A stretch of DNA of 63,992 bases, filler included, from Ministeria vibrans ATCC 50519 (Eukaryota; Protista; Filasterea): assembly GCA_943704425.1 (NCBI GenBank). It is 7 parts of 7 records of this genome, joined end to end, with 100 filler letters (N's around TTAATTAATTAA, not from the genome) between each part and the next. Parts side by side here need not be neighbours in the genome. Positions count along the whole stretch, not along the records: positions 1 to 27,016 come from CALSCP010002424.1; 6 more parts are not named here. One strand, 5' to 3'. Positions 2,788 to 8,158 of this stretch are shown here, in pieces. The translations under genes and the position numbers were made by a program. The notes below the pieces were generated by a model. It did not search any database, had not been told where the DNA came from, and saw only the letters and a program-made list of their open reading frames with translations. The stretch's first letter is position 1. Each line of letters opens with the position of its first letter.

Positions 2788-5700
2788 TTACTCCCCTATA
2801 GATTGAATTGGTGACTCGCTCTCGTCCGAGTCCCTTCGAAAGAATAAAATGTCTCCGTCGTTGGGCGCCGTGCCATCTCCCCACTCGCGGTAGATACGAC
2901 CCACCGTCGGCGCTTGAATTTTGCCCAGAGATGGAAGACGGCTCCGGAGTGTCCGCAGTGAGATGACCCGCTCGTCAGGGTGGAAGGCTGCTTGCTCAGA
3001 GCCCAACGCGCGCACAAGCACCTCAGTGAGGCACGTCTGCTTCTCGTCAACGGTCATGTACCCGCTCGAGTCCGGCAGTGAGCTTGCCAGCATCTGTCGC
3101 GCATGGCCCGACATGGCCGGTCCCATCCGTCGCTCCAGGTCCTCCTCGACAAGAGAGCCCGAGTTGCAGAAATCGCCAATGACCAACACATTGCACCCAC
3201 GCCACCGGATGTACCCTTCGATAACACCTCGCAGTGCGCTCAGGTTGAAACATGAGATATGCTGACTGGGTGTCATAAATGCGTCGCTGAGCACAAGTCC
3301 GCCAGGCCGTCCTCCCGCCCCATGTCCAATCAGATGCACCACAAGCAATGTGCTCTTCCCTCCACCCTCCTCCTCGCCAAACGTCGCCGCAATCTCAAGC
3401 AGGGCCTCCTTGATCTCAGTGTGCGTCACAGGTGAGTGCACACCTTTCTCGTCCACATCAACCACCGTCTTCACTGCAAAGTCGCGTTCGCGCCACATCT
3501 TCGACACATGCTCTGCACTCGCCACGACACCCGGCAGATCTTCAAACTGGTTCGCAACTTGTCCCTTGCTGTACGTGCTCACTCCGACCACCAAGGCCGC
3601 AGCATGCGTGTACTTCTCGAAATGCGCGTCTATATAAACAAAATAAGAATTATCGACAACGGAACCAACACAAGTCACGTTTCTCTACCTTGACCAGCAA
3701 TCATAAGTGGCATCTCTGGCTCCGTCTTCACCCACCACTCGGCGAGGCTCTCATTGCACAATAGCGTTCGTCCTTTCTTTTTCAGCTTGTCGTTGACCGT
3801 CTGCGCCAGACGATAGTGCGCAGTAGACTGTGCCACCTTGTCAGGCGGAAACAGAGGCTTGCTCTCCTCGTACGGATGTGCAGGAACCACCACTGCTTGA
3901 CCGCGCCAGCCCCACCGCAGAGAGCGTGTCTGATCACAGACTCGTGTGCAAATGTGCTCCACTGTGTGCCACACATCGCACGTTGACATCACCTCAATGC
4001 GCACAAACGACTCGTCCACATCGAGTCGCACACGCACAGGCGAACACCCGGTCATCACCAACTCGTCCGTGCAACGCTGTGTGGCACGGATCGCTTCGTC
4101 GGGCAGGGACTCACGCCACAGCGACACCACCAGCAAATGGAATGTTGCCAGTGAGACGGGTAGCATGACACCGTCGACGAACTGGTAGAGAAAGAGTAGG
4201 ACTGGTGGAAGCTGTTGCTTACAGGAGAATGCTGCACTCTCGGGCAGCAGCATAGGTACAAAAAGCTGCTTGTCGCGGCGGAACACGAGACTCAAGCGCT
4301 CAAGGGACGCCATGAATGCATCCACGTCGCTCACATTGGCGCCAGCAAGAAGGGCAACTTCGTCGGGGGCGCTAAACCTTTGAAAGAGTTGCCCGATCAA
4401 TGATGGCGCATCCTCCATGGGCTCAGTCATTTTCTCGCTTGCACGGGACGACGCCGCCTTCCACACCAACCACTCGGCCACTTCGACAGGAAATCCGCAC
4501 TCGGACTCGGCGCCAGCCGCATCCAGTGCGTCAAGCAGACTCTGCATCTTCACTCTTCCTTCCTCATGAGCAAACCCCGCCGCAATCACCTCCTCCAGCA
4601 TTGCCAGCGCACGTTTGCTCTTTGCTCGCTTCCACCGCGCCATCACCACTGAGCACAGCAGTTCAAGCGCGGCAATCAGTTGCGGCACATCAAACACAAT
4701 CGTGTCCGTGTCGCACACGGCCGACGAAGACGCATCGGCACGGCACACGAGGATCTCGGCCGCACTCTCCAAGTACGGCACCAGACCGGCTCTGATGTCG
4801 CCCACGTTGGGCAGTAGAGAGCCCAGAGTGACGCGCGGTTCGCTTTCGTTGAGAACAAGAGAGCGCAGATCGGACACGCCAGACATGAGCGAAATCTTGT
4901 CCAAGCGCGCCCACCGACCAATGAGATCCTGCGCTGCGACCCATTCCATCGGAAGACGTCGATTGCGCCGCACCGCCGAGTACATCGCCTTGCTCACAGC
5001 CGACAGACCAAGTCCCTTTCTGCTGCCCACCTGGAAGAAGGGCACACCGACACGATGTGGGTCGTCATCTGGCATGATCACATGGCCAAGCACGGCCGCT
5101 GCGCGACGTCGGACTTCGGCTGAGACAACTGAGAGAAGCGGCGAGGGGAAAGTGTTGCCAGGAAATGTGTCCACGTGAGTGCCCACGAGAATGACACGAA
5201 AGTACGAGTCGGGCGAGGTGGGCACCTGGCGGGCAATGATATGTGCCCACTTGGAGATGTGCTCGTACTGTCGTGCTGCGGTGATGGTGTCGCGCATGAC
5301 GGAAAGATCAAAGACGATGACATAGAGAGATTCGGAGCCCATGAAGAGTGCGGGGAGAGAGTCGTACATTGATTCGCCTAAACCACACCAAACAAAACGG
5401 ATGAGACTATTTCCATTGATAAATCAAAATGTTCCGACCGGCAAAGTCAAAGGTGTCCATATCAACGAACCCTCCTCGAGGCTTGTTCTTCCAAAACAGA
5501 CTTCGCACAAACTTCATAGCCTCTGTTTTCGTCGAGACAGGGTCGGGAGTCGTGTCGGCGGCAGAGGTTGCAGAGGTGACGGTGTCGGTCGGTGGAGGCG
5601 GGCATCCCGTGCTTGCAGAGACCAAGGTGGCGGTGGCCGGAGATGAAAGAGGATATGCTGTTGCGGCGGCGGTCTTGTCGTCAGCGGTAGAGGAGGTGGT

Positions 5701-8158
5701 GGGTGAAGGGCATGCTATGACTGAAGTGGCGGGGGTGGTGATCATGACGGTGGACGCAGGAGATGACAGAGCCAAAGTGTCCGTCGTCGTCACAGAAGTA
5801 ACGCGTGGGGCAGAGTGAAGCCCTGTTCCGACAGCGGATGGCCCTGCAACACTCCCACCATAATCTCCGGCCCCTTCCTCCTCTTCTACAATGACCCACT
5901 GTTTCTCTTCTTCGTCCTCTTCTTCACCTTCTTCCTCCTCTGTCTCTCCACTCAAGACTCCCGCCAAGCGAGATTCGTCCAATGGCACCGTCTCAAACTT
6001 GCTCATTCCCTCATCGAACGTCATGCGCACTTTGTACATGCGAGTCGCCAATGAGCGGTCCTCGTCGCCTGGAAGCTTATCGCCTCGCAGTGCAGCCACA
6101 AGAGCAGTCTTGCCTGCTCTCGTTGCGCCCAGGAACAGTACTTTGATCGAGCGTGGTATCACCGAGCCGCGAGCCATTGCAGAAGCAAATGCGTTCAGGA
6201 ACGCAGCATTTCTGGAAGGAGAGTAAAAGACAGCGGTTCAACAGACGCATTCTTTTTTCAAGTGAATTGAAAGATTACGGAAGATTAAAATCGCCAATAA
6301 GCCACTCTTGACGCTGACCGTCGCCGGAGATGGCACTAAACGCGCTTCCATCGGTGGAGACTTCAAATTTATCAACATCCCTATCATTAGATAGATCAAC
6401 ACACAAACTCTATACAAAAACTACTGTTGTCATACGGAAGATTGCACGTCAATGTACTGATTCGTGTTCCCCGCACAATGCTCCACATTTTGATCTTCGT
6501 GTCATGAGAGCAACTGTAAATGGTCTTTCCATCACGAGACACACACACCCGACCGACAGAACTAAAAACACAATCCTTTTAGTGTCAATATCATATTTCT
6601 TTTTCATTTCCTACTCTTTGTGACCCACAAACGTGCGCACACATTCTCCTGTTTGCACATTCCACACTTTCACCGTCGCGTCTGCTGAACTACTGATTAC
6701 CAGTGACTCATCCGGCGAGAACACTGCTGAGTTGACCGCACTGCAGAAATAACGTTAATCTTAGGGAGTTCACTACTCCCTTCACTCTCTTACTCCGTAT
6801 GACCAGTGAGAGTTTTTGTGCACTTTCCACTGTCAGCTGACCAGAGTTTGATTGTAGTGTCGCTTGATGTACTGAGAATGGTCTTTCCGTCGACGGAAAA
6901 TCGCACTGAATTCACACCTCTAAACAAAATAAATAATTATAATAATAATAATAAAATTAATAATAATAATATTAATTACACGTAATTAATAATAATAATT
7001 ATTATTAATTATATTTTTATTATTATTATTATTATTATTATTATTATTATTATTATTATTATTATTATTATTATTATTATTATTATTATTATTATTATTA
7101 TTATTATTATTATTATTATTATTATTATNNNNNNNTTATTATTATTATTATTATTATTATTATTATTATTATTATTATTATTATTATTATTATTATTATT
7201 ATTATTATTATTATTATTATTATTATTATTATTATTATTATTATCCTTGTTAGTTTCAGACGCCACTAAAGTATTCACTCTCTTTTTCGTACTTGGTATG
7301 TCCCTCAAGTGTCATTTCAAGCTCTTTCCTCTCAATGTCCCACACTTTCACTGTCTTGTCATAAGACCCACTGAGTGCTTTCTTTCCATCCGATGAGAAC
7401 TGGACGTCCCACACAATGCTACAAAAAGAGTAAATTTGAGGTCAAGTCCAAAACAACACCTATCGTACTCTGAGTGGCCTTCGAAAGTCACTTGGCATTC
7501 TTCGCTTTTAATGTCCCACAGTTTCAGCGTTTTGTCATACGCGCCACTCAGGGCCTTTTCACCATTGGGAGAGAACACTCCACTGGTGACGCTGCTACGT
7601 TTACAACCACAGTATCATTAATAATAAAAATATTTTCATAATAATATAATAATAATCTTACATTTGGTGTCCTTTCAGTGACTTTTGACACTCTCCACTG
7701 TTCAAATCCCACACTCTCAGTAGGGATTCGCTGCAACAGCCAAGAAGGTGCTTTCCATCAAAGGACACATCAACACTGTGAATGACACTAACAGAGTAAC
7801 ACACAGATTTGTTTGCGGGCGAGTGAGAAGAACCAGTGTGCAAAAGAGCCCTGTGTGCTTACGGTGAGGGCTCGGGAACCTCTGAGTGCGGCGCGTCAAG
7901 GCAGTGGGCGCGCGAGAGGTCGGCGGTGTGCCACACCCAGGGCGCACTGCTGTCGAACCCTCCGCCGATGATCCACTGCTCTCTGGGCGTCAGGCACAGG
8001 CCGTACATGTGCTCGCCGTGTCCCCCCACGGTCGCCAGCGCACCGTCGATCTGCTCGCGGCCATCGTCGCGTTCACTGAACACAACCACAGAATGGGCGC
8101 CTGATGCTCCAACCGTCGTGTAGACGACCGCCGAGTCTCGAATTCGCGTGTAAGGCAT
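2788..8158 (-). CDS. WD40-repeat / Roc GTPase / COR / C-terminal caspase-like (peptidase C14) fusion protein, 11 exons, 1485 aa
   Basis: Exons 8158-7863, 7787-7662, 7594-7469, 7418-7293, 6919-6794, 6740-6615, 6561-6436, 6380-6279, 6211-5439, 5377-3689 and 3629-2788 splice in frame via GT-AG introns (4458 nt total). WD40 repeats (e.g. FSPNGEKALSGAYDKTLKLWD...GH); Roc G1 GATRAGKT, G3 DFAG, YVIVFDLS, G4 VGTHVD; caspase fold ALVVGVSTY...HLIGHG...IGDFCNSG. A further upstream exon cannot be excluded. Confidence 0.88.
7016..7243. repeat. (TTA)n microsatellite in an intron of the WD40-Roco gene
   Basis: Pure trinucleotide tract with a small gap. Confidence 0.95.

Follow-up and report, generated by a model that had tools for sequence, protein, structure and literature searches.

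A WD40-Roc-COR-caspase gene of the filasterean Ministeria vibrans and the family to which it belongs

Structure and transcripts of the gene

We analysed a stretch of 63,992 nucleotides (nt), filler letters included, joined from parts of seven records of the Ministeria vibrans ATCC 50519 genome assembly (GCA_943704425.1; 29.7 Mb in 2860 contigs); this whole stretch is called the window below. In its first part, derived from record CALSCP010002424.1, a single gene occupies the minus strand from 8158 to 2788 and encodes a WD40 propeller, a Roc GTPase, a COR domain and a caspase-like protease in one polypeptide chain. The coding region begins with ATG at 8158-8156, ends with TAA at 2790-2788 and consists of 11 exons with 4455 coding nt, corresponding to 1485 amino acids (aa) and interrupted by no internal stop. 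The first-pass annotation of this DNA had joined three large open reading frames (ORFs) and several small WD40 exons into a protein of the same length, which the phase bookkeeping of our 11-exon model reproduced, with GT-AG borders at all introns. Splice sites and motifs were read from the DNA sequence and checked by hand. Domain searches were run exon by exon, the joined model serving for lengths, phases and stop counts only.

Exon 1 (8158-7863, 296 nt, donor GTAAGC) encodes the N-terminal part with one or more degenerate propeller blades, and is homologous, from residue 1 onwards, with exon 1 of the paralogs L028, L031, L036, L038 and L045. It is followed by six exons of exactly 126 nt (7787-7662, 7594-7469, 7418-7293, 6919-6794, 6740-6615 and 6561-6436), all starting in phase 2 and each coding for one WD40 repeat of 42 aa. 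Exon 8 (6380-6279, 102 nt) carries the last, partial blade and the linker to Roc. The first half of Roc, together with a disordered insert, lies on exon 9 (6211-5439), and the second half (4989-5377) opens exon 10, whose remainder encodes COR-A and COR-B (3720-4988; exon end at 3689). Between these two exons, intron 9 (5378-5438, 61 nt, phase 1) falls within the glycine codon of the DFAG motif. Intron 10 (3630-3688, 59 nt, also phase 1) marks the boundary between COR and caspase, the latter being encoded, as a Peptidase_C14 domain, by positions 2791-3629 of exon 11 (3629-2788). A very short 3' untranslated region (2765-2787) follows.

Public sequencing runs were mapped on positions 2600-6900: X1 and X3 from one study, X5 from another study of 2011, and X13, a DNA-type run. 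Contigs from X1, X3 and X5 lacked the introns and displayed the joints 3629|3689, 6211|6279, 6380|6436, 6561|6615 and 6740|6794; a sixth joint, 5377|5439, was present in X3 only. Six of the ten introns are thus transcript joints. All skipped intervals have the borders CT..AC on the plus strand and hence GT..AG on the strand of the gene; the DNA run X13 was continuous across all six sites. Among them are the two introns for which restoration of the reading frame had been predicted beforehand, 5378-5438 (DFAG/ESMY) and 3630-3688 (GQ/DAHF). Both are canonical, both are of phase 1, and both were spliced out in RNA-type contigs and retained in X13.

One contig of X3, of 2528 nt, runs over 5351-3689|3629-2765, from COR into the caspase exon, which places both domains on one mRNA. 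In a second X3 contig, of 1307 nt, four WD exons are joined to the Roc exon; it reaches 782 nt past position 6900, which is about the length expected of the remaining upstream exons.

A stop codon separates the COR and caspase ORFs in genomic DNA, and the whole gene is spanned by no single contig, the assembly graph breaking at words common to the paralogs. These two facts would suit a Roco gene with a caspase gene of its own standing next to it, the two being connected by occasional read-through, and separate genes had been named among the refuting outcomes already in the first-pass annotation. Such an arrangement can hardly be upheld. The 59-nt intron is removed precisely and with restoration of the frame in X1, X3 and X5, with equal depth on both sides; the interval between the two parts offers neither a start codon nor space for a promoter; and over 40 paralogs have the same junction.

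Two other observations on junctions were set aside. X1 contains a joint 5378|5928, skipping 549 nt (GT..TA on the minus strand, with three mismatches), which would delete the Roc insert; we take it for a chimera of paralogs or of assembly, not for alternative splicing. The 896-aa ORF of paralog L011 was at first considered as an intron-less proof of the fusion and was dropped, since its COR-caspase junction may be a retained in-frame intron; for this reason the transcripts were used as proof instead.

Introns 1-3 and intron 4 (7292-6920) lie outside the transcript-mapped stretch and were placed by their GT-AG signals, by frame and by the conserved pattern of 126-nt exons. Exons 2 and 3 have an alternative in-frame AG 12 or 3 nt downstream, so that the choice of acceptor may differ. 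Intron 4 (373 nt) is the only long intron of the gene and is filled by a microsatellite, an (AAT)n tract exceeding 200 nt (7019-7242), with a gap of 7 N at 7129-7135. Given their common length and phase, the WD40 exons (6436-7787) would permit gain, loss or shuffling of exons in frame, and equal spacing is seen in paralogs, L028 among them. At the other end of the gene, contigs of X1, X3 and X5 stop at 2765-2771, which gives a 3' untranslated region of about 20 nt, an unusually short one. X1 also shows 33 unmatched letters, not poly(A), past this end.

Domains of the encoded protein

The products of the WD exons matched PF00400 with 34.9, 28.2, 22.5 and 20.5 bits, two of these values exceeding the cut-off of 27 bits. 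Together with the alignment of the repeats, these matches identify six tandem WD repeats of 42 aa as a WD40 beta-propeller.

Motifs of the GTPase are distributed over exons 9 and 10: the P-loop GATRAGKT at 6129-6106, the intron-split G3 motif DFAG from 5448, and the G4 motif THVD at 5180-5169. The Pfam Roc model matched the exon 9 product over model positions 1-42 (16.2 bits, E 0.013) and the paralogs over positions 1-41 and 56-119 (17.6-26.3 bits). The best sequence matches of the second half in the PDB were to the Roc domain of LRRK2, and they were weak (E 0.15). His67 and Asp69 are invariant in alignment A1, and the P-loop is kept in the paralogs. In L010, L013 and L017, P-loop and GTHxD share one unbroken ORF (796, 946 and 843 aa, respectively), intron 9 being either absent or read through. 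Between switch I and G3, Roc is interrupted by an insert of about 160 disordered residues (5482-5955), acidic at first and then rich in Ser, Thr, Pro and Ala, whose length differs widely among paralogs.

The region directly C-terminal to Roc was identified as COR by its predicted fold and by ESM features, not by a sequence profile. An AlphaFold2 model built from 17 relatives reached a predicted local distance difference test score (pLDDT) of 83.5 and a predicted template modelling score (pTM) of 0.76. When this model was compared with the PDB by Foldseek, the top 30 matches consisted of Roco structures only, including CtRoco (6hlu and 3dpu), LRRK1 (8e05), LRRK2, an isolated COR (3dpt) and MbRoco2 (4wnr), with probability 1.0 and E values of 1e-7 to 1e-4, at a sequence identity of about 10-13%. 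The nearest ESM-feature neighbours of the 564-aa Roc-COR ORF were likewise all COR-A/Roc clusters (0.95-0.97).

Exon 11 matched Peptidase_C14 (PF00656) with 23.0 bits, which exceeds the cut-off of 21.4, and the relatives P0002-P0005 carry a precomputed PF00656 annotation. Other sequence comparisons gave weak matches: AtMC4 as the best one in the PDB (E 0.0013) and nothing but a weak 'caspase' match in PADLOC (E 0.012). The AlphaFold2 model of the domain (pLDDT 83, pTM 0.87) was matched by Foldseek, with probability 1.0, to GSU0716, AtMC9, caspases 8, 7 and 3, and MALT1. The catalytic dyad, which had been described as intact and as lying in a metacaspase- or orthocaspase-like D-x-C context, was located at the level of codons. 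The histidine codon cat (3324-3322) lies in LIGHG and the cysteine codon tgc (3168-3166) in DFCNSG; the contexts HLIGHG and DFCNSG resemble those of metacaspases. We conclude that the C-terminal domain is predicted to adopt a C14 fold of caspase/metacaspase type with an intact dyad.

The score of this Pfam match is marginal, and in our own reading of alignment A2, which is unverified, a serine stands where canonical metacaspases would have the S1 aspartate of L-x-G-x-x-N-D. Both points might be taken to mean that the domain is a pseudo-protease, a non-catalytic module for dimerisation or scaffolding, and that the whole protein is a GTP-regulated scaffold. However, none of the 21 aligned sequences departs from His102 or Cys154, although their overall identity is only about 50%, and in the model the two residues directly follow the strands 93-101 and 146-153, an arrangement shared with active caspases. 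Loss of catalysis is, on these grounds, an improbable explanation.

Evidence from the transcript junctions, from the folds of COR and caspase, from the invariant dyad and from dozens of paralogs built alike thus converges on the single-chain architecture proposed in the first-pass annotation, in which our confidence is very high.

Paralogs, genomic surroundings and possible function

The Ministeria genome contains at least 40 near-full-length copies of the Roc-COR and caspase segments and about 12 further copies that are fragmentary or contain stops; we estimate the family at about 40-50 paralogs. In every inspected locus the two segments were adjacent and on the same strand, with 36-66% identity. 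The paralogs hardly differ in their effector, and their N-termini vary. The full series of WD40 exons is repeated in L028, L031, L033, L036, L037, L038 and L045. Ankyrin repeats are found upstream in L039. At L042 (on contig G000:C2822; locus positions 3-3931, plus strand) the upstream ORFs carry leucine-rich repeats (LRRs) in one case and Roc, NB-ARC and DUF7779 in the other, and the region is either a giant gene with two switches or a tight cluster of receptors. A second Peptidase_C14 domain is encoded by a 606-aa ORF at L030 (on G000:C1441; locus positions 3935-5752, minus strand), just upstream of a Roc-COR-caspase paralog. In L035 the caspase is truncated, and in L040 and L041 (G000:C491 and C986) WD40, Roc and COR are followed by unrelated ORFs, without a caspase.

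We searched protein sets of 1.84 and 5.8 billion sequences for relatives. Against 1.84 billion representatives, phmmer with the 564-aa Roc-COR ORF returned no more than four matches, of which one was the 546-aa relative P0006 and the others were short fragments; Roco proteins from other sources were not among them. When the caspase ORF and the 896-aa ORF of a paralog were used in word-indexed searches, five and seven matches were returned, all of them unnamed ORF fragments of JGI or ENA origin; P0003, the sole fragment that was traced, belongs to a metagenome scaffold in ENA. Neither an annotated full-length relative nor a distant sequence homolog was found in the two sets. As judged from these sequences, the Roc-COR-caspase family appears to be specific to this lineage.

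Other candidate death or immunity genes reside in the same genome. NB-ARC was detected at no fewer than 29 loci, including fusions with C14: in L006 (G000:C1613:120996-123065, minus strand) and L007 (G000:C328:29623-31338, plus strand), Peptidase_C14 and NB-ARC share one open frame of 847 and 746 aa, respectively, so that the genome also possesses caspase-STAND fusions. On the WD40-Roc-COR-caspase gene itself, Pfam found no NB-ARC or NACHT match in any exon product. Further along the window, a 1406-aa ORF on the plus strand (22301-26521) is Apaf-1-like, with NB-ARC (59 bits), an APAF-1-like winged helix, an APAF-1 helical domain and WD40 propellers; its assigned domains begin past the first 285 residues or so. 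Between the two lies a MAP-kinase-like gene on the minus strand (8648-10900), with a TEY motif and Pkinase matches, which contains a gap of 599 N (9085-9683) flanked by (GA)n. No match to chlorophyll a/b-binding (light-harvesting complex) proteins was found in the genome, which suggests a heterotroph, although the assembly may be incomplete.

What might such a protein do? The biochemistry of Roco proteins and the activation of caspases by induced proximity are established, and a working mode can be drawn by analogy with them. The propeller would bind a ligand or a partner. As in CtRoco and LRRK2, binding would alter the nucleotide state of Roc-COR and its COR-mediated dimeric or oligomeric state. 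The C-terminal proteases would thereby be brought near each other and become active, in the manner of caspase-fold enzymes under induced proximity, and would then cleave themselves or their substrates, giving rise to cell death or to a defence signal. Diverged paralogs with exchanged N-terminal repeat modules could form a repertoire of recognition. In its operation, such a protein would resemble both the LRR-AP-GTPase-COR-effector conflict proteins of bacteria and the NLR and Apaf-1 receptors. As a mechanism, this sequence of sensor, switch and executioner is plausible, falling a little short of what we would call probable, and from the same analogies we infer a role in immunity or cell death.

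The expansion of the family, the presence of pseudogenised copies and the exchanged N-termini fit a recognition repertoire, and this reading of the function is therefore strengthened. In its widest form it would mean that Ministeria, as a heterotrophic marine protist, maintains about 40-50 Roco-caspase receptors for innate immunity or cell death, in which a Ras-like GTPase-COR unit gates a fused protease and the propellers diversify by exon shuffling. We offer this tentatively, as a possibility worth pursuing.

Several points weigh against the proposed mechanism. Of the domain assignments made in the first-pass annotation, WD40 and C14 were recovered by Pfam, and COR and C14 by fold, but each half of Roc, taken separately, scores below the Pfam cut-off of 27 bits, and the Pfam COR-A and COR-B models gave no match on the 564-aa ORF. 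The large insert in Roc could hamper canonical GTPase cycling. In the comparable bacterial systems it is the effector that varies among paralogs; here the effector is nearly constant and the N-terminus varies. Expansion of a gene family is by itself no proof of an immune role, and the Roco proteins of Dictyostelium serve in development and chemotaxis. A prediction of a COR homodimer (residues 130-552, two copies) scored 0.00, gave no verdict and is evidence in neither direction.

The same architecture could also have been put to work in housekeeping or developmental signalling, where Roco-regulated, limited and non-lethal proteolysis would process substrates or act on the cytoskeleton or trafficking. 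Transcripts occur steadily in three unrelated-looking RNA data sets obtained without known challenge, which agrees with a function of this kind, as does the near constancy of the effector in all paralogs; metacaspases, moreover, have many functions outside cell death. Yet signalling of this sort would rarely need 40-50 diverged paralogs with 45-65% identity, pseudogenised or truncated copies and swapped sensors, and it would have to be reconciled with the abundance of NLR- and Apaf-like genes in the genome. We consider such a role rather unlikely.

For Roco proteins such as LRRK2 and DAPK1, the link with cell death and immunity is no more than indirect, and the manner in which Roc-COR controls its output domain is debated. 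With a protease as output, activation by induced proximity would be easily read out, and Roc-COR signalling could be studied on this family as a simple model. The presence of Roco-caspase, caspase-NB-ARC and Apaf-1-like genes together in one protist bears on the origin of the apoptotic and innate-immune machinery. If it were true that the family responds to viruses or predators, it would be of relevance for marine microbial ecology.

Comparison with known systems

In its fold and in its H-x-x-G-H-G and D-x-C-x-S-G contexts, the effector resembles the metacaspases and orthocaspases AtMC4, AtMC9 and GSU0716, whereas the residues of its S1 pocket appear to be different. The Roc-COR tandem has the fold of LRRK1, LRRK2, DAPK1, MFHAS1 and C. 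tepidum Roco. These proteins, however, bear a kinase or death domain as effector and no protease. LRRK2 shares, in addition, the THxD form of G4 and the possession of a WD40 domain, which in LRRK2 is C-terminal.

The proposed logic of a WD40 sensor, a nucleotide switch and caspase activation is common to the Ministeria protein and to STAND receptors (Apaf-1, NB-ARC-WD40 and caspase-NB-ARC proteins). In contrast to these, the switch consists here of a Ras-like GTPase with COR, and the protease is fused, not recruited through CARD. COR followed by a clan-CD protease is also known from cyanobacterial Roc-COR-CHAT proteins of about 900 aa in the ESM Atlas (COR-A 100%, COR-B 100%, CHAT 98%), which are bacterial and have CHAT in place of C14. 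A cluster of this composition, cyanobacterial COR-A+COR-B+CHAT, was the nearest named ESM cluster to the Roc-COR-caspase ORF of a paralog (score 0.80), a match that we treat as a lead only.

The closest counterparts in organisation are bacterial. Proteins combining LRRs, AP-GTPase, COR and caspase have been described as counter-invader systems (Kaur, Iyer, Burroughs & Aravind, eLife 2021; PMC8195603). The prokaryotic LRR-AP-GTPase-COR conflict systems employ at least 24 C-terminal effector domains, caspase among them, and the AP-GTPase was proposed to act in them as the switch in place of STAND NTPases (PMC8195603). One example is OQX07365.1, an LRR-AP-GTPase-COR-caspase protein of 879 aa (PMC8195603). 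Like the Ministeria protein, these bacterial proteins unite an N-terminal repeat sensor, a middle Roc-COR switch and a C-terminal caspase fold in one chain, are present as several paralogs per genome and have a predicted function in conflict or death. They differ from it in their LRR head and in their length of about 880 aa; the Ministeria gene is eukaryotic and spliced, with a WD40 head and a long Roc insert. Sequence similarity between their Roc-COR and that of Ministeria was not detectable by phmmer over the 1.84 billion representatives.

The first-pass annotation had regarded the architecture as undescribed. This does not hold for the core architecture, nor for the idea of a GTPase replacing a STAND ATPase, both of which were already known from the work of Kaur et al. 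(PMC8195603). As far as our searches reached, the claim stands for the eukaryotic and WD40-headed version. The architecture string AP-GTPase+COR+caspase is present in the source data of that study and 'WD40+AP-GTPase' is absent from them (PMC8195603), and our full-text literature searches found no report of a eukaryotic Roco-caspase or Roco-metacaspase, or of a WD40-headed version. New are, then, the occurrence in a eukaryote, the WD40 domain at the head, the interruption of Roc by an insert, the gene structure with one repeat per exon and the size of the expansion. The bacterial GTPase-COR-caspase conflict architecture is hereby extended into eukaryotes. If the function proposed above is true, the family would be to eukaryotes what the AP-GTPase conflict systems are to bacteria, and its nucleotide switch would be a third solution in addition to those of NLRs and apoptosomes.

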